From: Trichoplax adhaerens | Taxonomy: Eukaryota; Animalia; Placozoa | Direction of reading: 5' to 3' | Assembly (NCBI RefSeq): GCF_000150275.1 | Contig: NW_002060946.1 | Span: forward strand, 5,413,454-5,477,453 | Length of the DNA: 64,000 nucleotides | In this document: positions 8,560-57,965 of the stretch, one piece after another | How the letters are laid out: each line of letters begins with the position of its first letter | Position numbering within the stretch: position 1 is the stretch's first letter | Made by a program: the position numbers and the translations under genes | The notes under the pieces: model-generated | Databases searched by the model: none | What the model was told of the DNA's origin: nothing | What the model saw: only the letters and a program-made list of their open reading frames with translations

Positions 8560-9102
8560 TTACATGATGATACATTTATTATCTTGCCGTTGCTTTATGA
8601 GTTCATAGACAGAGAGATAACCTTGAAGACGAGCAGTCCGAGCAGGTGATTTTGCATCATAGTTCTTGATTTTACAATCGAGGGTATCAATCTTTAAGAT
8701 TTCTTGAACGATATCCCGATTTCCGTTACGAGCAGCTAAATGGAGAGCAGTGTCTCCTTTAACATTCTGAGCATTAATATCACGAATAAAATCACTACAA
8801 CTCAGTAGTAGCTGGACTATAGCTGCATGTCCATTTTCGCATGCTACATGAAGGGCCGTATCGCCATTGAGATTATTCATTGCAAGATCAATATTGGGGT
8901 GGCTATTTTTATAATTAATAATTACTTGCACTACTTTAGTACGGCCTCGTGCGGCAGCCAACAATAATGGCGTATTTTTTTTACCATCAGTGTCGTTAAC
9001 ATTCGCAACAGTCTTCAGTAGGCTATAAACAACAGCAGAATTACCGCGTTCAGCTGCTTCTAGTAGTAATGTAGTAGTACTATTCAATCTGAGTCTTTTC
9101 AT
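8560..9102 (-). CDS. Ankyrin-repeat protein (180 aa, ~4-5 repeats) with C-terminal CaaX (CIIM); intronless CDS, paralog 1
   Basis: Ankyrin motifs KNTPLLLAAARG, GDTALHVACENG, GDTALHLAARNG; ends DNKCIIM*. First in-frame ATG is at 9102 (the ORF-track start at 9147 is TTG). Confidence 0.9.
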   Translation of the reverse strand: MKRLRLNSTTTLLLEAAERGNSAVVYSLLKTVANVNDTDGKKNTPLLLAAARGRTKVVQVIINYKNSHPNIDLAMNNLNGDTALHVACENGHAAIVQLLLSCSDFIRDINAQNVKGDTALHLAARNGNRDIVQEILKIDTLDCKIKNYDAKSPARTARLQGYLSVYELIKQRQDNKCIIM

Positions 9103-12100
9103 TTTATACCAGTATGCTTTCAAGATGAAGCTCAAGCTTAATTTCAACTTTAATTTACAGTAATAAATTCCTATAAGTGAGATAAAGAATAGTTTTAAAG
9201 CTCGATACCTGTTTCATGAAGCGCTTAAACAACTTTAGTGATAAGTACACACACTCACACACAGTATTAATTTACTTCATATGGGATTAAAATACAACTT
9301 TGGTAGCAGTTAAGTATGAAATTGTCCAAATCAGTGCAAAAATTTTCTGTTACAAGCCGAATAGAGATTAAACTAAGCAGTAAATTTGAATGATGTAGAG
9401 CCTCTGAGGTTATGTAAATATTTAAAATTTGACCGATAACCAATTATGATTATTCCAACTGATCTCCAAAAACCGGATACGAATTGTTATTAATTTATCA
9501 TACTTTAGATAAATTTATAGTATCACCAGTATTACGATTCATATACTAATGATATACCATTTTATAATTCATAAAGGATAGTTTTTATTTTACTTATATA
9601 GGGACAAGAATCACGAAAGATTGTAAGCTATAATTTATAAATCTGATCCAATCTACTAATATATCCACTTCCGTAGATTTTCTGATTTTAATTTTAACTG
9701 TAATCTGTGACTTCTGTCGTATGAATGATTATGAAATGTCTTGTATTAGAATTTATCTTCGATAAGGAATGAATCTACTAGACGGAAAGACTTAGCTTCC
9801 AGTTACAAGTTACATTCACTACATGGCAATAAATTTGACATAAATAAATTTAACGTAAATAAATGGGGTAAATGTAAGAGAACACACCTGTAAACAAGTG
9901 TTATAGCATTGTTTACATGATAGTAGTTTAATTTAAGAAATTTTAATTAACTTCTGCTTATTGCATTATTGGCAGAAATTTAGTTATACTTCTTTCAGAG
10001 TATATAATGAACGTATATTAATATGAATTTTGCCTAAGGTAAAGGTGGTTTACACAGTCGTTATATCAAATTACGAAGAAGTTGGCATAAATCTGCGATT
10101 CTATGAAATAAATATTAATCTTCGAAGTGCTTTAGTAATATAAAATTTATCGTGATCAATATACATATTAGAATATATTCCCGTACAAGCTAATTTAAAG
10201 TTAAAACTCTGATTAATGACGTATTTAAGTTATTCTTGCTATTTGAAATTGAGAATATCATTACACGGATAGAAATTTTTGTTGAAATCGTTCATGTAAA
10301 GAAATGGAAACGTAATAAATCGTTTACTTCATTCACGCAGTATTAGACATATCATTCATCCGTTGATTTAAAGGTAATAATTTCAAAATCATCCTATCCG
10401 TACTTTTTACAATCCAACTATTTTTACCTGATATGGAACGAGAGATTTCTTCTTCAAGACAAGGAAGACAGAAATATCAAATGATTTAAGTGAATGATTA
10501 AGATGAAAATATAGATGGCGATTCTATTAGCGAAATTTTTATGAGTGATTAAAAAATTGAAAAGTAACGGTGGTTATATAACTATTTTTCGATTGTACGA
10601 ACTATCAATAGATAGAAGGCATCAAAATAGAATTCAATAATTGTATGTTGCAAATATAAAATAATTATCAGTACATAGAAGATTTTTGCATGACAATTGG
10701 TTATGATGATTGTAAGGAACAGAAATGATCACAATTAAATCGACTATGATTGATTTTTAACTTTGACGTAAGAAATAAAGGTAATAAAGACAATGGCTAT
10801 TTATCTGGACAAGACCTCCAAAAGGATAGTGCTGATGATGTCGTTACCCCAAAAACACTTATCCTATGATACCTATTACCTGATAATGTAGAAAAAGAAT
10901 AGAATTTGATTACGCTTAGATCCAATGAGATTGAACAATGTAACCGTAAAAAAAGAGCTGCTAATATTCTTATCCATTATGATATCAATATCTGACTTGA
11001 CTGAGATGGGTAGTACCGTAAAGGCTTTCGATTGCATCCTGTGGCGTAGCCCCAAATATAGCTAAATAGATTGTGAAAATTGTGAGTAGCAAACGATAGG
11101 TTGTGAGATTGTAGAGTAATAAGGTTCTAATTAGGTAAATGAGTTTATTAAGACTAACCAGTTACAGTAAGTATTTTAGCTCTGCTTAGAAATATCTTGT
11201 TAAGGTGTTATAACACCAATGAAGGGTGCAAAGCGTGCTGGAATAATTAACAAGGTTGATTATGTGTAAAAATGCAAATGTATATAAACCGGAGATTTTA
11301 TCTCAGTTGGTGAGTGAGCACACCATGTAATATAAAGTGAATTAAGAGAATTATTTTCCTAAGATCAGAGGTTTCATTTTTTTAACTTAGATTAGATACT
11401 GTAAGATCTCTCTTACTTCACTTATATATGATCAATTTGCTAGAATTATAGCACAAATTAGATTCCATAGTATTGCATAAGATACTATTTAATCGGCAAA
11501 CTTCTCTAAAGATCCGGTGTTAATCTCATTACTTACTTGAGCTCTACAATTAATATCTGTTCCAACTTGTAGAATAATAGCCCATTATATACTCACTCCT
11601 ATCTACGTAAGACCAATATCTAGGGTGGATTTTACAGTATTAGTATGTACTAGTATAATAATTTAGACTCGTCTAAATATGGTAGCGATCAAGCCCTTAA
11701 TCCAGCCATGTAGGCTGATATCTTGCTTAGATTTCACCTTTGTAATAGTATTGGCGCATGTAATAATTTCGATTTTTCTAAATTTAGTCAAGCCTTTATT
11801 TCCGGTATAACGGTATTTAAGCTATCTCCTCTTTACTTTTAATGGATATACAGACGGATATCTTAGCTGGATTTTTACATTCGCAAAAGCATTAAAGCGT
11901 GCAATAATTTAGATTAGATCCCTTAAACCAGATCTGCCAACATGTAAAATATCTCTTTGACTGCTATGGAAATTCAGGATGAGATCTTGGCCAGATTTTA
12001 CGCTTGTGATATCATTAAGAAATGTATTACTTTAGATTAGTTCTATATTGCAACTATACCCTTAATCTAGCCAAGACAACATGTAAACTCTTCCCAGTTC

Positions 12101-14445
12101 AATTTTATAGAAATAGAGCTCAAAAGTTTTGATTAGACTTTAGACTTGAGATATAACATTAAGATAGGTGATAGTTTAGATAAAATCTAGCCAGTAATTA
12201 TGCCTTTAGTGGCGACCCTATGGCAATTTAAAGGAATTAAAATATACAACCGCTAATATCAGTAAAGTGAAAGTAGATAATCTATCGGCATTGGTTGGCT
12301 TTGTACTATAGACGTGGACGTCACTAAAATTAAATAGCGAGAAATGATTTCTTGTTCCACTTCACCTTACGACATAAACTTATTCTTCAACCAAGGACTG
12401 CATGTATATATCTCCGCCATAACCATATCTAATGGGATAATTTTACAATGTAAGTGCAAGTATAATCAATCGATCTTGACCTGCTATATAACTAAGATCT
12501 ATCTCCATCACTAAGGATTGAGCAATCAACAAGAACCTAAAATGGTCATTCTTATTTGTTATTACACTACGGATAAACGAATAATGCATGATTCCAGAAA
12601 ACATGACTCCGGAAATTTAGCATATTTGAATTTCTTTTACTTTCCAGTCGAGAATAGAAGATCGGCTGGGAGATATCGCCTAAGCGTTAAGAAGCAAGAA
12701 GGAAATGCTCATTTACTCTGTTGGGAGTATGTAGCTAGCTATTCCTTAAGCTGCAAAATTGACTCTAATAGTTCACATCAGCAATAAACTATCCGAAACT
12801 TACCTCAAAAATTGAATTAGTTAAATACTTTATAATGCTTAAATTATCAATTTTATGATGCTTCCTATTGTCACAATTCCAGATAGAAAAACGTACAAAC
12901 AGCTAGATATCTGTTAAAGAAGAGTCCTCTAATATCCTGTTCAATCCTGCTACCTTAATTACTCGTATTAATTATAAAGCGCAATCTATTTACCCAGCTA
13001 TCATCAATAATAAGTACTTTACAGGATAATTCTGTCGTTTATTTATAGGGAAATTCAGCCGAATAGCAAGATAATGAATGGGCCTACCTGTAATTTCATG
13101 ATTGCTCCTCATAGGCGTAAAGTATTTTTCTTACTAGGTAAGAGATTACGAGTGTCGTAGCAAAGAACATTAGCCCCAGCTAATTCAACTTTTCTTGCAC
13201 CCATAATAGCATTAATTATATAGAAAGTCAACGGTAAAATCAACCATTATGTCTGAATAGTGCAATCGCCTGTAGGCCCATTAAAATGGACGATGCCTTA
13301 CACTGATTACTCTTCGATTACCTTGTTGAACTACAGTAATATGGAAATGGACAAGCTAAAACTCTGAACAACGAACAAGATTTCTATCGATTTTGTAGCG
13401 TTAAATTACTTCATTAAGACATTTTACATTTCTCTTTCCACCAATACCTTAGTACAAAAAGTCATTATTTTATTCTTGACTTCAAGATAGCCACATTTTG
13501 CAGGAGAAATATCGCACTAAATCAATTTTTTTCGCTATGATCAGTGACTGAATTATTATAGTTCATGGAATCATTCATGGCTCATAAATCTTGTAAATTA
13601 ACCTACTTTTAGGCCGGAAGAATTTGTGTCTGTTCACTATGTAATTGTCGAAAGAAAATGGCAACTAATAAACATAAAATGCTGGCTAAACTTAGTCAAA
13701 ATCGATATCTTTCTCTAGCCAAGTGGACACGACAGAAATAACATCTACTAGTGTTAAAATACAGAATTTTTCATCTAATGTTATACCTATCATGGCTTAA
13801 AAGGAATGAAAATATTTTATTTATTAAATAGAAGTTCAAGCAAATAAAGTTAATATGCATTATCAGATCATAAGAGAGTAGTAATTATCCCACTAGTTAA
13901 AGCAGTATCCAATCTCGGATGAAAAAGAAGAACTTTAATACTCCATAAAACCTCATAAATGAGACACTGAAAAAAAACATTTTATAATGTATTTTTAAAG
14001 TAATTCTAGTTGACCTTATAAGTAAGACGGTACCCATTTCTAAAATATAAATTCAATCTATCGTATTCAAATTGGAAAATATGCTTATATTAATCCTATA
14101 ACTTTGATTTCTTTTTAAATTTTTAGTCTTAATTATAAAAAATTGAGCAGGACCAATTTCTGTCAAGTTTTCAACACTAACTAAGAGTTTCCTGCTATTA
14201 TTTTAGTTGAAAATAAATCTTCTTCCATATCTCACGGTTAGTATTTAGTAATTTCTCCTTTTTAAGAATTAAATGTATCCATTTTAACACTTGCAAACTA
14301 CGGTAATTAAAACAGACGCAATAAGGTTAGTAAATGATTTTTCTGTAGAGAATATATACGTAACATGATCTTGAAGGCTCTAATTTAGGGCCGCTATAAA
14401 GATAAGTCCGGATATCGCAAGTTTAAATCATTTAAGGAAAAGTTT

Positions 14446-15033
14446 TTACATAATTTTACAACTTGGTCCATCTGCCGAAGCAAACTTGTGTAAATCTTCA
14501 GAAATGGTTTTATTTCCATTTAGTTTAGCCATGTGTCTAGGTGTCTTGTATTTCTTGTTTACTATTTTAAAGTTGATACCTGGAGTTCTTGCTAATAAAT
14601 CTATAGCACTTTTATGACCCACGATAGCCGCACAATGCAAAGCTGTATTGCCTTCTTTATTAACTGCGTTAACATCTTCAATCACTTGTCGATATTTTAG
14701 TAGCAATTTAACCACACTGGTATGGCGGCCAATACAAGCTAAATGTAATGCAGTATTGCCATCGCGATTACGATGTTGAACATCGATAGGTCTGCATCTT
14801 GTGGATGTATAATTTAGTAGAAGTTCTGTAGCACTAGCATGCCCATAAGCAGCTGCTAAGAGGAAAGGCGTATTATGATCTCCATCGACTGGATCTAAAT
14901 TAGTCATAATAGGAAGTAACGCTTTTAAACCTATTATGTAGCCATTTTCGGCATCTTTAAGAAATTGTTTAGAGCTTGCTTCGCCTATCGACTTAATATC
15001 ACGATCAATCCACTCTTTCGCGGCACGAAGCAT
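14446..15033 (-). CDS. Ankyrin-repeat protein (195 aa) with C-terminal CaaX (CKIM); intronless CDS, paralog 2
   Basis: HNTPFLLAAAYG, GNTALHLACIG, GNTALHCAAIVG; ends GPSCKIM*. An acceptor-like ttatag lies 2 nt before the ATG, suggesting a 5'-UTR intron. Confidence 0.92.
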   Translation of the reverse strand: MLRAAKEWIDRDIKSIGEASSKQFLKDAENGYIIGLKALLPIMTNLDPVDGDHNTPFLLAAAYGHASATELLLNYTSTRCRPIDVQHRNRDGNTALHLACIGRHTSVVKLLLKYRQVIEDVNAVNKEGNTALHCAAIVGHKSAIDLLARTPGINFKIVNKKYKTPRHMAKLNGNKTISEDLHKFASADGPSCKIM

Positions 15034-18000
15034 TTCTATAATTCAAGGTAAAATGGTTTGTCGTAGGAAAGTGTCGATACTTGGATTAAAATAAGTCACT
15101 TTTTCCTAGACTATCGTACAGTAGTTGAAAGTTGAAGATAGAAATTAACGTTAGACGTCTTTCATTTTTTATGAAGAAGTAGTGAGTTCAGCAACTCTTC
15201 GGCTTAGACGATTACCAATAATATCTTTCAACCAGTAATGGACGAAATGTAGTGTAATATCTGAACCTCCTCTATCCAAGTTTAATCGATTGCTGATACT
15301 GAGAAGAAATGACAACAGCTTCTCGTTAATAAAATAACGACGATAAAAGTCAATCAATAACCCTTAATCAACAGTCTTCTTAACCTTTCACTGATAAACA
15401 TGCCAAAATGTTTTCTTAAGTCAACAATGTCGTCGTTAGCAAGTTACTAGGAAAAATCAAAAGTTCACTTAATAATTAGGGTTCAATATGAGATTGAATC
15501 AAGCGCTAAAATAAATAATTGATCATCGTGATACTATTGCTTATATAGGGTGTCGTTAGCTACTACTGTATAGACACCAGAAATAGGTTGCTAATCACCT
15601 TAATTATTATGATTCTTTCCATTTAGCCCGACTTTGAACTCACTACATGCTTTTACATGTGCTGTATAAAAATTGACATCATCATCATTAGGCGAATAAT
15701 TAACTTTGACATCTTTGTTATTAGATAATGAGAACAACCCAGAATGTCACAAGCACCACCTACTTAGCCGGCCATTATGGATATCATAATATTTTCAATA
15801 GTTGCATACAATAGCAAACTGAAAACGATGATAATAATGATTATACTCGGTAATAACTCTGCCTTACAACTCCTATCCTAGGTAGAGATATAGATTTAGC
15901 CGTTATTTTCCATTATAAATGGTAGGCATTATATTAATTTTGCATGAGAATGACTATTTTTAATCACCTGTTGCGTGATAAATAAAGCTCTATTTTATCT
16001 TTCCTTCAACGCTTTTGCAATCTGTTGACCTTCTTTTATTGTAGAATGAAAAGAAATCTATAATCTATATCAAGATAGATTATATTTTCCTAATAATAAT
16101 ATCATCACGTGGATAATGACGTTATTCTTGCTAGACAAGATAATATGGGAAAGTTTGGCTAGAGAATAAAGTGTACAACACTACAATAGTAATCACGACG
16201 GATGACTTGATCGTTAATCTATGGATTATGATTTAATTTCTTATCCTCTTACGTAGGCATTACGAATGATTAACTCTTGTTGATAAAGACACATATTTTG
16301 CATTAGCTAAAAGCACTCAATTAGAATTGAATATTGATACTTCTATTACTGTTATATAGGGTTGTGATAGAATTTAAAAATAGGAATAGGAATAATATTT
16401 CATCATGTTATGATTAATAACTTAACTGGAATCGAACAACATATGGTATACTTTACATTTTGTAATGTCAGTGCCTTTAAATTAGGATCCAAGGCATCAA
16501 CTTTGATTCAATGACGTAAAACATTGTTTTATTGTAACTAAATGAATTAATAATTAAGAAAACAACTCCAAATACTATTTATTGGTACTACATAACCTTG
16601 ACTTTTATTATCACGTGAAGAATTCATGAGTATATATATTTTATAAATAGTAATCAAGTTACAACAGCTCTAGTGACCTATGGGCATAAAAGATGAGTAA
16701 AAATGTAAAAGAGAAGAAAATTAATTCAATTAGGATTAAGGTGATATAGAATCAATATTCACCCAGTCATCATTCTAATGATTATGTATAACTCAAAATC
16801 CAACGTACCATTAATAAAATGCGTTCTGTATAAGATATATATATATAATTTGACAATATTTAAAGTGTTTTTGTAATGTAGTACTTATAAATATTACTAT
16901 TAATAATTTTAAATCAAGGCAATAAATTATTCTTCAACATCTATTTCAAAATAAAGATTGCATGAAGTAATAGTCGAATCATCATTATTATTTATAACGA
17001 ATATAGTACAACATTTAATCCAAGTCATAATTATCCTTATTTTATTGTTTGTTAGTTATAATCATACAAGGGTAAAGAAAAGTAAAGTGTTACTATCTTA
17101 CATTGATAACAATCTGATTCACTCAGTCAATAATACAGATTTGCATGAAGGAGGTACCAGATTGTGTTTGTTACTATTTATAATCATAGAGGACAAGTAT
17201 TCATCATAACCAAGCCCAGTGTGAAGGAAAAAATACTTAAGATAACACACTCCTGACGTTGACTTTCAACCAACTACTAAACCAATACAATAGTTACTAT
17301 GTTAGACTATGATGTCAACACACAATGCATTATATATTTATGTGACTTTAGATTTCCACGGTAACAGAGTCAAGTGAAAATAATTTTCTAGATAGCAAAG
17401 AGTTTTATATTTGTGAAAGATTATCAGTTGATACAATGCATCCAACTTGCATCCTACAGAGTATATTCTAGCATTCAAATAATGTGCAAATATATATATG
17501 TTAAAGACCAGATAAATTAAATTACTTTTAAATCAAAAAGGTCGAAAAATCGAAATATTTTTCTGCATGTGTTTATTCTTTAAATAAGAACATAAATTTA
17601 ATTGATGTTAGTGGTTATTAGCAATCACCTGTCTCTGGCTATAGCGCTTTGTATAGCTAAATAAATTTATTACCAGTTTATAATCTAATTTACTAACAAC
17701 TAGACCCATATCAGTACTGTATGTAGAAAATAGCATCGCTCAAATTTAAAGTACTGTATCCTAATATATAATATAACGGTACAAAGCATCAACGTTCTTG
17801 CTAGGTATCTGACTGATTTCCTGCGAGACTAATTTTTTAATTAAATTATGGTTTATTTTCCGCTTCAGTCGAAGCATCTACGTCATTTCCAAATGCCTGT
17901 TATTCTTTCTTGCCATAATTACATAGTAGCATATTTAAATCAAAGGAAATGCATTAAATTTAACTGTTGAATTTTTGCTCCGAAAATTATTTGCCGGTAT

Positions 18001-21000
18001 ATGAAATTAACTTACCTACCCTTGTTCGCTACAGAACTCTTCATGATGGGCTGTATTAATTCAATTTTCTTAGCTGTAATGGAAAATAAATTTTATCCCG
18101 TAAACTAGTCAACGGTTTTTAATAATAGATGTAGGCTAATAGCTTAAGCTTAGCCGCTTTGAAACAATCTAAATGATAACATTCAGTATACTGATTACGT
18201 AATCGATCTCTTGGGAACGGGTTTGTTTTTTCCTTCCTTTGCTGCAAAAGCGTACAATAATATCACAGTATCTAATGACTACGATTATTTAACAAATAAG
18301 ACGTTAAATCCAAGCTAGAACATATCATTTTTCATTCATTTATTCTATTTAATTGTATCATGGTTAAAATTTCTTCTATTAGTAATTTTTATTACTGCTC
18401 TAAAATAGCTGTTTAGATTAAGTACCAGTAAGTAATATAAAAATTTTAAACTTACAATTAGCTACAGTAATTTCAGAAAAGAGTTCAATCTGAGATTTTG
18501 AAGTTGATGCCATATAAAAAATCTTAAATATTATAAATTCTACTCTCAATGGTACATCATAAAAGTTATGTAATCACCAAACATTGCACTTCAATTTCAT
18601 TCCATCAAACTAAATATCATGAATAACAGATACAAAACTTTATCTAAACTGGATAGCTACAGTCAAAATCCTAACCTTGATGGAATGGAAATATGTTAAT
18701 ATTACTTTTGCTCTTAAGGCCAAGGATACAGCACTTACTGTATTGAAATAATTGCAATTGTCCTATACTAAATAATAAAACCTGATAGAATTAAATGTAG
18801 ATCCGTAATGCTATAGAACAAGAGATGAAGGTTAAAAATATAAAATCTAGCAAATAAATTATTTGTCTATTTTATAAATCAGCTCGGAAAGTGTCTAAAT
18901 AAAGAATAACTGCGCCATTTACGTGATATGAGGACATTCTCTTGTTACTGTATAGGATAAAAATATATGAAAGTATCATCCATTGAAAAGACATCAATAT
19001 TCCGAATAATAAGATCGATCGAAGGAGCAATCGAAATTTCGATAAGCAGGAAACTCATTTCAGTCAATATCATGAAATCATCATAACAGCTTCCCAAGGA
19101 AAGCAAAACTGACTAATAAACAACCATCAGCATTGTTGATATTATATAAATCTATAATTTCTACTGTTACATAACGTCAAATTCTTTCTGTAATAGCTGC
19201 GTGCACGTGCATAAACGGTAACACGAGTTGTGACGAAAACCAATCATCCAGATCTAGATGATTCATTACAACAGCAAATTAAAGGGAGAGTTGAGACATT
19301 GCGGCGTAAATGTGCGCTTCTTTCCAAGCTACGGTCTCGAATTGTGTCCATTACTCAATACTAAATGATATTATGGCCAGTATACCAGTAAATTTACCTG
19401 TATTAGTTTCTGTCTGACCTGTAGGAAAACTATTCTCTGCTAGATTATTTACGTGTGGTATTTCTAGGCCTACATAAAGTAAATAAACAATGTCAAATAA
19501 GAAACGGATATTGAACCAATGTGTATAAAAGCTGCCATAATCCAAGCAATACTTACCGTATATATTGGCATAAAGCTCCGCAATAACAAAGTTTCATTGT
19601 TTAGAATTATTTAGAATTTGCGTATTAGTTATTTCGTAAATAACTAAAAATGTTCTGACAAATTATAATAATTCATTTCCTAGACTTGACTTTAAAAATT
19701 TCATTCAGCGGCTGTTATGTGTCTAAACTATTATTGTACACGTTAGTTACTCCCAGAGTAGCTTGCAAATTACCGTACATCAGTTCTTTTTATTACGTAA
19801 CTTGTGCTTATTTACTTCTACTAGTAACAACACATACCATCATGATACGTGAATTTCACTAACTATACTTAGGGCTATGAACTAACCTATACTATTTCAT
19901 ATGATAAATCCCTACATATCCATACTAAGAGTTACAGAACAATTACATTTTGATATTAAATATTATATATTCATCTAATTTTACCTTACAATTATAAATA
20001 CTTGTTTTTACGATACCGTACATATCACTAGCATTGCCTCCTTAACCCAAATTTTATTTCAGTATAGCAGGTCCATCAGACATTATTTCAATTTTGCTTA
20101 CAAATTGATGAAATTTGTACTCATCCTAATTATTAATCGCTTCCATAGCATAGCGGAACATGTCAATCGGCCACAAAATCAATTTAATGAGTTCCTTAAC
20201 TTTGAATAACTGTTGATAGACAGTTGATAATTTTAATTGCAGTGAGCTCTGCCGTGTCAATTATAAGGATAGGTTCAGTTTTGAACAAATTCTTCTTATT
20301 TCTATTTCCGGAATAATACTATATTGTAAAGCATATTGTATGCGATTATGCTTTTTAAGTCGACTACGTATGATCAGTATAATATACGAACACACAAATA
20401 AATACACGTATAGTATATATCAATCTACATGTAAGGTAAACGAGCATACCTGTATAACTGCATAGAGTAGTTTCAAGTCATCACACAATGATGGAATTAA
20501 ATAGATTAACTAGAGTAACGATCAAAAATTATAGAATCTACGATTAGTTAATCTATTCGGTTACTGAAGATCGCTCTTTTCTACTATTTTATTACGCTAG
20601 TAATCATTGCCGGAAAAAGTACATAATACCTAAGAATTTAAGTAATTCAGCCAACTGATTCGGATTTTGTATTAAAAATGATACTATAATTGGATGATAT
20701 AGTTTTATAATGAAAGTAGCTTGTATTTTTATATTAGAGAAAACTAATAATTTAAATTAATATTAACCTTCTCTCTACATTAAATTTGAAATCAAGTTTA
20801 TCCCAGTAAATGCAGCGATACTTTACATTAAGTAAGATAGGCAGCTGAAATATTACATCTTTTAGCTATTCAGCTATTTTGAGCGAAAGTTTCTTAATTA
20901 TGCAAAGCAGCATGGAATAGCGAACCAATACCAATATAGTATCTTTATACAGCCAATCGTACTTATTCTATCACTTCCCATTCTCGATAAAAATGTGTCT

Positions 21001-23641
21001 GCTAATTGATCGCAAATTTCACAGTTAAAACTGAATGGATGGTTATGCTATTTTTCACTTATAGAGATCAAAAAAGTTTAAATATAGCTACAACATGCGG
21101 AATACTGCTATTTTCTGATACGTATAGATTCTGATTTCCATTAAGAAAACATTATAAGGATATCATGTGCAGTCTTTACCATTCTATCACAACTTTTAGT
21201 GAAGAATGGCATATGAGAGAATAAGGCTTACGAAGGAATAATACGGTAAAGTAAAGCTTGTAACAAGCGCAAGATTAAAATATGGAGAGTGTTAAGGCAA
21301 CTAAACTAGTTACAATCACTATTATTGAAGTCGATGCCTCTATATTAATAAGAACTAATAGAAAAGACTTCCAAGCATTTTAATATTTGTATCAGCATAA
21401 ATTCATATTTACATAGGGTAATAGGTATGAATAAACTGCTTGTGCATGATACAAAATTATTACATTTAAATAACGTATTTTAATGAATCTATTCATGATG
21501 AAATATGCTAAACAAATGCAATATATACATTTTTATATTCTATATTACAATGAGTAGTTCCTAGTTCTACTGTGATATGAATTCTACACGTAAATAAAAA
21601 TAAGCTAAAGTTTATGAATAAAAGTGAATTTTATAATTTATCACGTAAATCCATTGGCTCTTAGTAATTATCACTCTATGCAATCCAACTCCTTTTTCCA
21701 CTAATAGTTAAATATTTTAAAAAAAAAAGACTTGAAGGACCGAAAAATATATGCTTTATTCTTTCACTGATTTTAAGATCTCCAAATTTTAATTAAATAA
21801 TTGACCCCCCTAAATCATTTCAATCACCTTCGTATTGTTGCAATACATATTAGTATATACCATAAATTCCTACCGTATCTAATCAAAACTCTTAATAACT
21901 ATTCAACTTACCAACGTGTCCCTAAAGTCGAATATCGGTATTACACTGCAATCAGTAGTAGATATTATTAGATTATGCCAAATGATAGCAATAAATTGAT
22001 ATACAGAATGAACAGTAATCTTTCCTGTTTGATTTTTCATTTGCCTTCATTATCAGTTTTTATTAATTAAATTGAAAGGAAAGAATAAATACAGATCAAA
22101 GCCCACTATACTCGTAAATTGAAAATGGATATAGAATATTACTATACTGTAAAGAAATATCACTTTGGGCTATGAAATCAAATTTATGTATGAATAATCG
22201 CTTTCCATAGTGCAAAAGTGTTGATGAGATATGCTAATCCTAGATTGGGGTTGAACAATTGCCATAATAAATATAGATTTGACGATGAATCCAGCATTCT
22301 AAATATTTCAGGTATATTATTTAGCATATGTAATAAATGAGGAAAATAAAACAGTCAACCGTTTCCTGTAATATCGAGAAATTACTTTAGGAAATAGTAA
22401 TTTGTTTTCTTCCTCACTAAGATATGTAATATACGTGTGTTCTGGTAATAAAGTTACAGATGTAACAAATTTAATTTACCGATAATCTATAATTTAATAA
22501 TGAAGTCAGTTTTGGATACATTGTGTATACTCAACGTTTTTAATACTATAACATCCTGAATATGACGGAAGATTACAACAAGAAGTTAATCATGAATATC
22601 ATCACCAAATCAATCTTATTAATTTCATCTGTGTGCTAAAAGTATTGTAGCAGTAGTATTAAAGAGGTGTTCCTTATAATGTCCTTTAAATACTATTCAA
22701 AAATTAACAGTTATTAATCCAAAGTAAGAACATAAGAATAGATTAAAAAGTGCGAAATTAAAGTTGTATTCAACAATGTGAATTATAGTTTAAAGTTAAT
22801 TTGATGGTGATGTCGATTACTCCATCTTACTTCTATGCTATAGTTAGATCATTTATAGTTGCTGTAATTGATCAGCGTTTTTATTATTATATTTATATAC
22901 AACAAACGTGTACAGTTCGTAAATTGTTTGCTTTATTCAGGAACACATAAACGCATGGAATTACTCTTATAATATTTATAAAATACGTTTTCTGAAATGT
23001 TACTAAATCAACGCTACTCTAGCGCCATTAAAGTTCAATTTTCTTCCTACTAAAAGATAAACTTGATTTTAATTGTATGCAATTAATAATTACTATAGTT
23101 AAGTTCAATAACTATCAAATATACGTCATTTTTCCATACCAGAATTAAAACTATACTATTTTATAATCTTCATTTGAATATTTGCAGATCTAAAATTTAA
23201 AGAAGCATGATAGTAGTTCATGCGATAAAAAAGTTCATTTTTTCTTCTTGGCAACGTCGCAATCCAAGCTTGGACGTTGTAAGAATTCATAGTGCCAATA
23301 TAACTTATAAAATTACCAGTAGCGTTCAAATTAGGTTTATCCAGCTAGTTGGGATTACTATAGATAGAAGTATTAGCCATGATAGAAAATACAGCGTTGT
23401 GATATATAATCTGTTGAGATACAAAATAAAGCAGAAAGCAATGACTAAAATGATCTGCGGATTGAGAACTTTCATATGAATATTCAGAGATAGAAAAGAA
23501 AGATTAAGAATAATATCTACTTGATTCAAAGAAAGAATGAAAGGATAAGTAATAGTATTGCTATACAAAGTGAGAATGGAAATAGTTATGTGAAAATGAA
23601 CGGTCTAAGTACGCGAGCGAAATGAATAAGACTTACCATCA

Positions 23642-24229
23642 CTACATGAGAATACATTTGTCATCTTCGCTTGCAAATTTTTTCATATCCTTAGCTAGCG
23701 ATTTATGTCCGTTACTTTTAGCTAACTGAGCTGGAGTTTTGTAGTCTTTATTGACTTTAGTAGCGTTAATGTTGGGTACACGTAATAAAGCATTAATGAC
23801 ATGATGATGTCCTTGGATAGCGGCTAAATGAAGGGCTGTATTTCCATCTTTGTTCACAGTATTGATATCTTTAAGGACTGCTGGTTGCTTGAGTAATATT
23901 TTAATAATATTCATATGATCACTATAAGCTGCTAAATGCAATGCCGTGTCGCCATCACGATTTTGACCACAAACATCGATCGCTTTGCTATACTTTCCGC
24001 TGGAACAATTTAATAACGTTTCCATTATTTTAGCATGTCCGTTAGCACAAGCGAGTAAAAATGGTGTATTTCCTTGATCATCTTCTGGACTCAAGTCTGA
24101 ACATACCTTAAGTAATGCTTTGACACCTAGATGACTACCTTTACGAGCATCTTCTAATAATTGTCGATGACTTGCTTCTTCGACATTTTTAATATCGCGA
24201 GCGATTAATTCTTTCACCGATTTAAACAT
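23642..24229 (-). CDS. Ankyrin-repeat protein (195 aa) with C-terminal CaaX (CILM); intronless CDS, paralog 3
   Basis: GNTPFLLACANG, GDTALHLAAYSD, GNTALHLAAIQG; ends DDKCILM*. GCCATG start context. Colinear with paralog 2 (KE.I.RDIK...EAS..Q.L.DA..G...G.KALL; KFAS.D). Confidence 0.92.
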   Translation of the reverse strand: MFKSVKELIARDIKNVEEASHRQLLEDARKGSHLGVKALLKVCSDLSPEDDQGNTPFLLACANGHAKIMETLLNCSSGKYSKAIDVCGQNRDGDTALHLAAYSDHMNIIKILLKQPAVLKDINTVNKDGNTALHLAAIQGHHHVINALLRVPNINATKVNKDYKTPAQLAKSNGHKSLAKDMKKFASEDDKCILM

Positions 24230-24296: not shown

Positions 24297-26839
24297 CTAC
24301 TGGAAAAGGATTAGTTATGCTTTGCCAATATATAGATCTCTCACTGGGTTTTAGTACAATTTATAAACTTATACAGCGTTAATCTTGTTATTGTATTGCT
24401 TGACTGATAATGAATAATTAATCGATTTACTACATCATCGATTAACTACCGTTACTATTGTTTTATGTTTAGCAAGTCCGACAGTATTTTCTATTATATA
24501 AGGGACAAAAAGGACGAATGCTAATGCTCAATTTATCCATTTGAATATTATTCTATGTTAGCCTTAATGTTTCCTAAATTGAGGAGGGGCGGAGGATATG
24601 AGTATTGTTATTGGAACAGCTGGTATTCAAAATAATAGACAATATCCATTGATTGATCACTATTTTACTTCATTTCTTTTCATTTTGTTTTTACTCATTT
24701 ATTTTAGAGTAGCAATGATATCCAAAACCTTTGCGGAAAATCATTCATTTCTTGAATAGCCATCATCTACTGCTTCTTTACCATTTTCCATATTGGCACA
24801 AGACCGATACAGTATCGTTATGGATGTCATTTCTGTCCTAGACTGGTAGCGTAATTCCTCTTCGGCTTAAGAATACATTCAGGATTGTATTTTATTGAAT
24901 TATATAGAGATCAATATATTATTCAAAGTTATCAATGGAATGGATTGAATACAAGTATATCCATGTTGATGAGATGAATTTTATCCGATGGACGAGATAC
25001 GCTCTACTTTAACTGTTGATCCTAGGTTAAAGTAGCAACATGAGTAGTCGAAATATTACTGTTCTTTAGCTATTTGTGATCGGATAGGGTAAATGGAGTA
25101 GATTGATATACTGAGCTAGGTGTGGCTGTGTTTTGAGCTAAGATTATGAATAAGTAGTAGCTTTGGATTTGTTTAGCGTCCTTAGGCTTGCAGTGATGTA
25201 ATGTTCAAGATTGTTGCCATAGTTATTGTAGATTGGTACAGCAGTTCTATGGCGAAAAAATAGATCATAGAATCAATTTGCTTGTGGTATGAGTTTATTC
25301 TTTGAATGAATAGTACTATATTTTCATGCTGAATAGAATAGTAAATAGAGTTGTCAGTGGTTGTATAACCGAGAAGGCTAGTGTTGTATTTTCACTTTCA
25401 GCTCTTTGCCTGTAGTTTGCAACTCTTGATGACAAGTTATTGGGTATTGATTGTTATTACTATAACTTCGTCATACCATCATGAGGAATTGCCTGAAAGA
25501 TGAATGATTTTGATCATGCTGCTCTGAAGGCTATAATCTTGAAAATCAATCCTAAAAGTGATTGAATTATTTCTCTAACATTAGCTGATTCCGCTACACA
25601 CGATGATATTTTCTACTTTCTCTACTTATCCAATTTATAACCACTTGGAGAATATGCAAAGTTATTTCATCAGGATTAGTATGGAGAAGTTGTAGAATTG
25701 CTAATGTGATTGTTAAGTCTCTACCCTATTCTACGAGTATAGTGGCCGAGGCCGATAGGACAGACCTGTTAGGAGACAAGAAAGCTTAGGGATATGACAT
25801 CAGAATCATTTATCTCTTTCAATACACCGATATGAGAACTTATATACTAAGCAAGTATAGTTATCTGTCGCTACCACGAAGAAATGAGTATGAAAAAAAC
25901 AAGTTTTAATATACGAGTACATATGTCTATGATCGCTACAACTTCGGTCACACGTATTTCATCAGAAATGATCATTACCTCTGATAATTAATTACTAGCA
26001 ATTAGAGATTGTTTTTGTTGATTATTCCTTCCAACTCCGATTCTATAGCCGTCCTATACATAACCTTCTTCTCTTTTATAGTAATAAAGGATAGGGAAAA
26101 CTAACAAAAGCGAACCTTAATTCTAAAGCATATAACAGTGACTTATCGACGATGCAAGAGTTGACATGAATATATGATAACGTAATGGAAACGGATAAAG
26201 TGATGACAAAATAGCTGCGAAATGCGACAAGGCCCTATGGTCATTGAGCCTTTGAATGACTACTGAAGTATATACTTAGCATTACAGCAGTAGCTTTTGC
26301 CTATATTTTAGTCACCGATCTCTCTCCTGCATCGTTGAGAACATGATCAGTCATGAAGGTAGAGGTCGTGTAGATTGTTTACAAGTAGTTGTGCTGCAAT
26401 GTGCAAAGTAGATGTCGTCTTCAGTCTAAGTGATTATACTGTAAATATTGTTTAGTTCGCGACATTTATTATCCATCGGTGTGCATTCTTTTTACCCAAC
26501 TCTCATGCTGTCTACTTTATTGCTACTAGCTGTATCATCCTAGCTTTTACCAGTGATGGCAATAACCATGTAGTGTCATTAGCAGTAAGAACGCGAAGTT
26601 CGAAAATCTCTTGTTCAAGATTTTCTCTCTTTTAGTAGTTAAGCCTTCCCATATACTGTACAGTATCAAGTTTTAATATTGCGATCAAGTGGCTTAATGA
26701 GCTGCCAGGTACATTTGGATTTGTAATATACTTGAATTGAATATTTCAAAATAATTGAAGTATTTGAGAAGTCATTAGGTCACTTATTCATTAATCGTAG
26801 TACAGTATTCCAATAATTCTTGATATCAGTCCCTGTTGA

Positions 26840-27360
26840 TATACAGTACAGTAACACAAGACTAATAGTCTTGCCTGACGGCGCCATTTTATGATGTCCA
26901 TTGTACAATGTACAGTACAGTATGAAATCTTCCTGGTCTAGTTTGGTCTTGTTGTTAAACCACGGACCACAGGCACAGTACCAAAGACTACAGTACAGTA
27001 CATATGAGTGTACAGTACTGTGCACTGTACTGTACACTGAGCGTCCAGTACGGTCGGTGTGATACGGACAGTACAGATGGCTGGATCCTGCCATGTACTG
27101 TACTGTACAGTGTACTGTACTGTACACTGTAGCCTCAATCCAAGCCAACAATCGCATCATATGGCTTTGAGGGTCATCAGTTTCATTTGATGGACATCTC
27201 GCATACTGTAGCCTAATGCGCGCTGTCTAGAACTAGGCATAGAATAGTAGAAAAAGGCAGCCGTAGGCTAAATAGTAAGGGATTCAGGGTTGAAACGATC
27301 CGATCCGGTTCCAGAGCATTAAGGACTGTACCGTACAGTGTACAGTGTACAGTACGATTG
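26840..27360. promoter_or_regulatory. CAGTA/TACTG array; putative (possibly bidirectional) promoter of NDUFV2
   Basis: Dense tacagtacagta/gtactgtactgtac runs, locally higher GC, directly upstream of the NDUFV2 ATG. YY1-like AAAATGGCG on the minus strand at ~26882-26890. Confidence 0.6.
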
Positions 27361-57429: not shown

Positions 57430-57965
57430 CTACAGTACAGTAGGTCTGACCAACGCTAAAAATAGAGTACCGTAGACTACAGTACTATATACTGTGCATT
57501 ACAGTACAGTATACTGTACTATACTGTCGAGCATACGGTACACTACTGTCGAGAGACATCTTTGCGGTACTTTATTCTGTACTGACAACGTTGAACGTCC
57601 CCTTTGAAAGGTAACTTGGAGACAAAACACGGTTGTACTACTGTACCGTACTGTACACTGCACAATGGTGCTTGACATACAGTACAGTACAGTACAGTAC
57701 TGTACAGTACTGTACACTGTACAGTACATGTACTGTACAGTATTATACTGTACCGTACTCTGTACTCTACTGGACTCTACCATACTGTAGACTTGGTCCG
57801 GCCTTCTATCTGTACCGTATAACATCCATCCTTCTAGCGCGCTGGCAGCTTTTACTGTATGTATAGTACTGCGGTTGTTACGGCACAACATTGGCTTGAA
57901 AACGTTGAACAGGAGGAATCTGTTTGTGAAGAAAATTGTTTTCAACTAGCTGCATTCAACAAGGT
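57430..57965 (+). promoter_or_regulatory. Largest CAGTA/TACTG array; putative promoter plus non-coding first exon of the WWP/ITCH gene
   Basis: tacagtacagtacagtacagtactgtacagtactgtacactgtacagtacatgtactgtacagt at ~57677-57741; consensus donor AAG|GTAAGC at 57963/57964. Confidence 0.6.

Follow-up and report, generated by a model that had tools for sequence, protein, structure and literature searches.

Three ankyrin-only genes with a CaaX end

We analyzed a window of 64,000 nucleotides from Trichoplax adhaerens (assembly GCF_000150275.1, contig NW_002060946.1, positions 5,413,454 to 5,477,453 of the forward strand) and focused on three small genes within it, named g1, g2, and g3 here; all coordinates below are positions in this window. 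Judged by their sequences, these are real, old genes under strong purifying selection, and each encodes a small ankyrin repeat (ANK) protein that ends in a CaaX box. We consider it fairly probable that they encode ANK adaptors that are restricted to placozoans, farnesylated, and carboxyl-methylated and would bind their partners on the cytosolic side of membranes. The placozoan family is what is new; both of its parts were already known, as were prenylated ANK proteins (MYPT3/TIMAP and AnkB).

The genes are co-oriented minus-strand open reading frames (ORFs) of 588 nt each, at 8560 to 9147 (g1), 14446 to 15033 (g2), and 23642 to 24229 (g3). The models of g2 and g3 fill these ORFs as single exons encoding 195 aa each, with the C-termini CKIM and CILM; both draw on the ORF, Pfam matches, and orthologs, and g3 additionally on an AlphaFold2 model. 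The g1 ORF reaches upstream as far as a TTG at 9147. Sequence comparison makes the ATG at 9102 its most likely start, because nucleotide similarity to the orthologs begins exactly there, the orthologs P0121 and P0122 have 180 and 181 aa, and the gene call in Trichoplax sp. H2 has 180 aa. The resulting g1 model is a single exon at 8560 to 9102, encoding 180 aa with the C-terminus CIIM and supported by the ORF, Pfam, and ortholog similarity. An additional coding exon upstream of g1, for which a plausible AG acceptor lies near 9171, was considered but rejected, as ortholog conservation begins only at the ATG at 9102. The g1 model on record in the window's own assembly (P0123) is a 128-aa fragment that begins within the first repeat and ends ahead of the C-cap, so that it has neither the start nor the CaaX box; the H2 assembly carries the full 180-aa model.

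Only ankyrin families scored above the Pfam cut-offs in the three proteins (Ank_2, Ank, Ank_3, Ank_4, and Ank_5), with Ank_2 E-values of 2e-42, 1e-31, and 7e-23; Ank_KRIT1 and LRRK2-ANK stayed below threshold. ANK proteins are defined by tandem repeats of ~33 residues with a G-x-T-P/A-L-H motif and a helix-turn-helix; the Pfam scores, together with the modeled fold and its closest structural matches described below, place the trio among them. The initial annotation had described three co-oriented, ANK-only paralogs that are diverged along their length. The ORFs, the Pfam content, and five helix pairs in the AlphaFold2 model bear this out, as do the pairwise identities of 35% (g1 and g2), 35% (g1 and g3), and 52% (g2 and g3).

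Conservation, copy number, and selection

In a six-frame search of the 105.6-Mb assembly, only g1, g2, and g3 matched at E <1e-28, and the next match was a generic ANK exon at E 1e-9. The trio recurs on a contig of Trichoplax sp. H2 with order and orientation unchanged; the three gene calls there are single-exon and 99.5 to 100% identical, and no further gene is called in 20 kb. The window's g2 differs by one residue from its H2 counterpart (RDD43062.1), and H2 g3 is RDD43045.1. Each paralog has an ortholog in two more lineages as well, A (Logan assemblies from three SRA runs) and B (ENA metagenome assemblies, one of them from the marine-biofilm sample SAMN08714533; PMC6355793). Lineages A and B are presumably placozoans, since their orthologs are 72 to 85% identical to the window proteins and nothing else comes close. 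The g1, g2, and g3 copies are intron-less throughout, orthologs included.

The 12 sequences used in the following comparisons are the three paralogs in four taxa. In a maximum-likelihood tree, g1, g2, and g3 were each monophyletic with all four taxa (support 95 to 100). Thus, both duplications predate the lineage split, and copy number has been constant at three. The ratio of nonsynonymous to synonymous substitution (dN/dS, Nei-Gojobori) between orthologs was 0.06 to 0.20 overall, with 0.085 to 0.12 for g1, 0.06 to 0.14 for g2, and 0.08 to 0.20 for g3. The corresponding dS was 1.2 to 2.8 against Trichoplax and 0.4 to 0.6 between lineages A and B; these comparisons cover three or four taxa, with dS saturated.

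By several searches, the family looks restricted to placozoan-type sequences, which agrees with the lineage-specific set that had been proposed. A word search of 5.8 billion proteins returned only such sequences close to g3 and g1 (E 1e-50 to 1e-103), followed at E 1e-23 or weaker by generic ANK proteins of ~31% identity. Among the 228 matches retrieved, canonical CaaX ends outside the family occurred only in three longer, unrelated ANK proteins (CAML, CLVF, and CLIF). The C-terminal 46 residues alone, in a word search that needs shared 5-residue words, yielded three candidates, all of them g3 orthologs, which fits the lineage restriction. A family profile built from nine sequences gave 448,801 matches among 1.84 billion representatives; the best 150 were all multi-repeat ANK proteins of 931 to 6,572 aa, so this search was swamped by giant ANK proteins and is uninformative about small relatives. 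Within the Trichoplax genome, ~45 ANK loci screened with a crude pattern that catches some frames only gave no further convincing single-exon ANK gene with a canonical CaaX box, the sole other Cys at -4 being a CNCN at the frame end in locus L013. This screen sets a lower bound on the genome-wide count.

A conserved CaaX tail

The boxes lie at 8563 to 8574 in g1 (CIIM, codons TGT ATC ATC ATG TAA, with the TAA stop at 8560 to 8562), at 14449 to 14460 in g2 (CKIM, TGT AAA ATT ATG TAA), and at 23645 to 23656 in g3 (CILM, TGT ATT CTC ATG TAG), all on the minus strand and all immediately followed by the stop. The Cys at -4 and the C-terminal Met, reported before for these three ends, extend to the whole family: all 12 sequences have Cys at -4, Ile or Leu at -2, Met at -1, and a stop directly after. 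The -3 (a1) position is free and holds I, K, A, T, or S. In lineages A and B, the g1 orthologs end in CIIM and CTIM, both g2 orthologs (P0004 and P0006) in CSIM, and the g3 orthologs, 82 to 85% identical, in CAIM (P0002) and CTIM (P0003).

At the nucleotide level, the Cys codon alternates between TGT and TGC, as in g2, where H2 has the synonymous TGC for the window's TGT, and the -2 codon is ATT, ATC, ATA, or CTC; the motif and the position of the stop are unchanged, and the residues just ahead of the box vary freely. From these sequences, the retention of the box is not chance, because 12 of 12 keep motif and stop despite the codon changes; the pattern is that expected of a selected CaaX box. 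For farnesylation, a substrate is expected to combine a -4 Cys with an aliphatic -2 residue and an X of M, S, Q, or A, and every member of the set ends in C-x-(I/L)-M followed by a stop. A Met at X favors farnesyltransferase, with geranylgeranylation possible as an alternative, as for K-Ras4B. Boxes of the CSIM, CAIM, and CVIM type are farnesylated motifs of lamins and K-Ras4B, CSIM and CAIM being lamin boxes. The placozoan ends thus belong to the same C-a-a-M class, in proteins without a GTPase or filament domain.

The residues ahead of the box give a more divided picture. The initial annotation had placed basic residues upstream of all three boxes. This holds mildly for g1, where the net charge over the 20 residues ahead of the Cys is +2 to +5 without a contiguous basic run. 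It does not hold for g2 and g3, where the charge is -1 to +1, acidic residues adjoin the Cys, and the polybasic region of K-Ras4B is absent. No sequence has a second Cys within ~20 residues upstream of the box, so the trio lacks a palmitoylation Cys, and no paralog shows the Lys/Arg run or extra Cys of K-Ras4B- or H-Ras-type plasma-membrane targeting.

Fold and binding surface

We modeled g3 with AlphaFold2 from a nine-sequence family alignment (mean predicted local distance difference test score [pLDDT] 88, predicted template modeling score 0.81). In this model, a long N-terminal helix (residues 2 to 30) runs into the N-cap, and five helix pairs follow, which correspond to the N-cap, three full repeats, and the C-cap. 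The last helix ends at 187, and residues 189 to 195 are disordered (pLDDT <50, no secondary structure); the g3 C-terminus is thus predicted to be accessible and unstructured, as a farnesylation substrate needs. Both g2 and g3 have the N-terminal helical extension of ~20 residues, whereas the helix of g1 is missing its first ~15 residues.

The best Foldseek matches of the g3 model in the PDB were designed ankyrin repeat proteins (DARPins), with template modeling scores of ~0.75 to 0.83, a root-mean-square deviation of 1.3 to 2.0 A, and 34 to 39% identity. Together, ESM Atlas, PDB sequence search, and Foldseek returned generic ANK matches only (DARPins, ankyrins, TRPA1, GABP-beta, and INK4), and no specific natural ANK family stood out by sequence or fold. 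DARPins of the N3C type and consensus ANK domains share the five-repeat stack with the trio; DARPins are synthetic, whereas the placozoan proteins have the longer N-terminal helix (g2 and g3), insertions in inter-repeat loops, and a natural, conserved CaaX box.

In order to compare binding surfaces, we took positions 2, 3, 5, 13, 14, and 33 of each repeat, in DARPin register, as contact positions. Within orthogroups, these positions are 67% identical and the rest of the domain 82%; between paralogs, the values are 26% and 43%. The contact surface changes more rapidly than the scaffold, which holds for most ANK proteins, and it is not the same in the three paralogs. The proposal of a kept anchor with diversifying surfaces is therefore only half right: it describes the differences between paralogs, but not the orthogroups, in which contact positions are largely retained and dN/dS is low. 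Low dN/dS, an unchanged number of copies, and a surface largely conserved among orthologs would together fit three stable, distinct partners.

A proposed route to membranes

We infer from the analysis as a whole that the trio is farnesylated, resides at membranes, and acts as adaptors. Each gene encodes a ~20-kDa, consensus-like ANK domain (N-cap, three repeats, C-cap) with a CaaX box. If the known CaaX pathway, from which these processing steps are carried over, applies here, cytosolic farnesyltransferase would farnesylate the Cys, RCE1 would remove the last three residues, and ICMT would methylate the new C-terminus at the endoplasmic reticulum (ER). The window's own genome contains loci of the corresponding families: three for prenyltransferase beta subunits (PF00432, an assignment at family level), two for alpha subunits (PF01239), one for ICMT (PF04140), and one for an Rce1-like protease (PF02517). 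It also has two loci of the GMP_PDE_delta carrier family (PF05351).

Endomembranes rather than the plasma membrane would be the expected destination, because none of the proteins has a Cys for palmitoylation and g2 and g3 also lack a polybasic run. We therefore picture g2 and g3 as residing reversibly on endomembranes of the ER/Golgi type; a larger share of g1, which is mildly basic, may be found at the plasma membrane. The trio could also shuttle on a carrier of the PDE6-delta type. Given the linker of ~4 to 5 residues, the ANK stack of a farnesylated protein would sit right at the membrane, and its groove could hold a partner close to it, a different one for each paralog.

Several points weigh against this proposal. 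The second membrane signal is absent from g2 and g3, so that stable anchoring is not assured. Only ~4 to 5 residues link the folded domain to the Cys (residue 192 in g3), which is short for a CaaX substrate. The three PF00432 loci represent prenyltransferase beta subunits in general, any of which may belong to farnesyltransferase. The ANK repeats offer no clue to the partner, and the family is described here from sequence and predicted structure.

If farnesylation is true, we know of no simpler ANK binders tethered to membranes in nature, as each would consist of a DARPin-like domain and a lipid tail. The trio would give placozoan cell biology three compact handles on what is recruited to membranes and would form a natural counterpart to engineered CaaX-DARPins, which are reported to have been farnesylated enzymatically in vitro (PMC9569580). 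Our search of the literature on placozoan ankyrin or prenylated proteins and on the H2 accessions returned nothing on the g1 to g3 family. The trio had been put forward as an undescribed system: it is indeed undescribed in the literature searched, but "system" is too strong a word for a small gene family. The trio is real and conserved, but it opens no long-standing question and its sequence implies no partner or phenotype.

Alternative explanations

The farnesyl group may instead serve as a protein-protein contact or a handle for a carrier, so that the proteins are mostly soluble or are sent to a compartment such as cilia. We regard this as unlikely, though several of our observations suit it: g2 and g3 have neither a polybasic run nor a second Cys, the linker to the folded domain is very short, and the genome encodes GMP_PDE_delta-family proteins. 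There is also a precedent in Spindly, whose farnesyl is reported to serve as a protein contact at kinetochores (PMC4436830). However, neither a carrier nor cilia are indicated by anything specific, and the conserved blocks upstream of g2 and g3 described below contain no RFX X-box. Furthermore, CaaX proteins with a farnesyl group only generally remain associated with endomembranes, which is where the membrane-adaptor proposal would place the trio.

A second alternative, which we find very unlikely, is that the genes came by horizontal transfer from an intracellular symbiont and represent bacterial ANK-CaaX effectors in domesticated or mimicked form. Such an origin would account both for the lineage restriction and for the lack of introns in genes and orthologs of an otherwise intron-containing genome, but old retroposition explains the missing introns equally well. 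Bacterial ANK-CaaX effectors do exist. AnkB of Legionella pneumophila is a Dot/Icm effector with an F-box that binds SKP1, ANK domains, and a CaaX box; the eukaryotic machinery farnesylates it at Cys 169 and thereby anchors it to membranes (PMC2916131). AnkB and the trio have in common a small size, ANK domains, and a C-terminal CaaX box. However, AnkB is an injected bacterial protein with an F-box, a domain absent from the Pfam matches of g1 to g3 at E up to 0.01, whereas the trio consists of animal chromosomal genes that are conserved in Trichoplax sp. H2 and have no close bacterial relative in our searches.

The search for bacterial relatives covered 185,579 bacterial and archaeal species genomes and found generic ANK loci only, 24 to 43% identical over their best segments and mostly within much longer ORFs where the frame was readable. 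The word search of 5.8 billion proteins likewise returned no close bacterial protein. The genes themselves are embedded in AT-rich animal DNA (window GC 27 to 40%) within a contig of 8.16 Mb and have conserved, TATA-like upstream blocks. Two of the 80 bacterial and archaeal ANK loci, both from host-associated bacteria, end in CaaX-like CLLQ and CAIQ (L087 in Endozoicomonas sp. ONNA2 and L104 in a Babeliales metagenome-assembled genome), which lends the idea of such effectors some support. These two ORFs are possible prenylated effectors in their own right and are unrelated to the placozoan trio.

A related scenario assigns the trio a symbiont-facing role. As a placozoan invention, three different ANK "hooks" would mark the cytosolic face of the ER or other endomembranes and could help to manage something peculiar to placozoans, such as their intracellular bacteria; alternatively, the trio would stem from a bacterial ANK-CaaX effector that the host has domesticated. 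With its farnesyl tail and very short tether, each protein would present its binding groove directly on the membrane toward the symbiont compartment. We give this little credence. The initial annotation's suggestion of a decoy or of immune or symbiont recognition is not supported, as it runs against strong purifying selection and three copies kept since before the lineage split.

Highly diverged, trimmed orthologs of a characterized ANK family are a further and highly improbable explanation, the obvious candidate being MYPT3/TIMAP (PPP1R16A/B). These cytosolic animal proteins also combine an ANK domain with a C-terminal CaaX box, which leads to their prenylation and membrane association (PMC6737228); such shared features do not define a family alone. 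Members of the MYPT family carry an N-terminal MyPhoNE element and a KVxF motif for PP1c docking ahead of the repeats, as well as a regulatory C-terminal domain (PMC6737228). All 12 placozoan sequences lack both the MyPhoNE pattern (R-x-x-Q-[VIL]-[KR]-x-[YW]) and the PP1c docking patterns ([KR][VI]x[FW] and [RK][RK]?[VI]x[FW]), which largely refutes this explanation for MYPT. The repeats fill nearly all of the 180 to 195 aa, with only the tail besides, leaving no room for a C-terminal regulatory domain. Thus, the earlier reading that the trio has neither a PP1 motif nor an F-box stands.

The automatic names in H2 might seem to point to other known families, as g2 is called "PP6 regulatory ankyrin repeat subunit B" and g3 "RIPK4." We read them as generic best-hit labels that are misleading as to function, because the paralogs received different names and contain neither a kinase domain nor any other domain besides ANK. 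The structure and sequence matches, with DARPins, ankyrins, and TRPA1 at the head of the lists, single out no natural family either.

Finally, the C-x-(I/L)-M end could have a non-prenyl role, for example as a degron, as a redox Cys, or as a C-terminal peptide bound by PDZ or other domains, and hydrophobic C-termini can indeed be PDZ class II ligands. This is hardly credible, because what stays invariant (Cys at -4, aliphatic -2, X, and a fixed stop) coincides with the definition of a CaaX box, and a1 is free, in line with farnesyltransferase substrates.

Upstream regions and genomic surroundings

Two non-coding regions upstream of the genes are conserved between lineages, both on the minus strand. 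Upstream of g3, a candidate promoter or 5' untranslated region at 24360 to 24654 was found by nucleotide similarity across lineages; ~410 to 425 nt beyond the ATG can still be aligned to both other lineages at 74% identity, though the coding dS exceeds 1. This region includes a conserved TATA-like element at ~24360 to 24373 and a near-invariant block at ~24564 to 24650 with a CAGCTG E-box-like motif and a C-rich run. Upstream of g2, a candidate promoter at 15449 to 15550, ~415 to 515 nt from the gene, emerged from blastn (an 83-nt match to lineage A at 73% identity) and a three-way alignment, with a TATA-like element at -514. On the basis of this conservation, the blocks may be promoter or 5' untranslated elements of independent transcription units.

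The stretches between g1, g2, and g3 contain no long ORFs, and the window has no Rfam matches. Neither direct nor inverted repeats of >=40 nt were found around the genes, so nothing indicates that a segment was duplicated recently or that a mobile element flanks them. In lineage B, a two-exon protein-kinase gene lies ~2 kb downstream of g2 (contig L018:4088-5032, minus strand). The window contains no match to this gene, nor does the whole Trichoplax assembly at E <=1e-10, so synteny could be followed no further in this lineage.

Elsewhere in the genome, an Ank_2 scan gave 808 candidate exons. Some of them form dense arrays outside the window with one exon every few kb (C1410:6.68-6.85 Mb; C1413:5.35-5.68 and 9.01-9.10 Mb); the arrayed exons encode ~60 to 180 aa, mostly 80 to 100. 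This abundance suggests that the genome has giant ANK genes or large clusters of ANK genes. Within the window, a TACAG pentanucleotide microsatellite of 12 copies occupies 57678 to 57742, and TACAG-rich stretches give rise to spurious "YSTVQ"-rich ORFs at 26780 to 27160 and 57499 to 57945.

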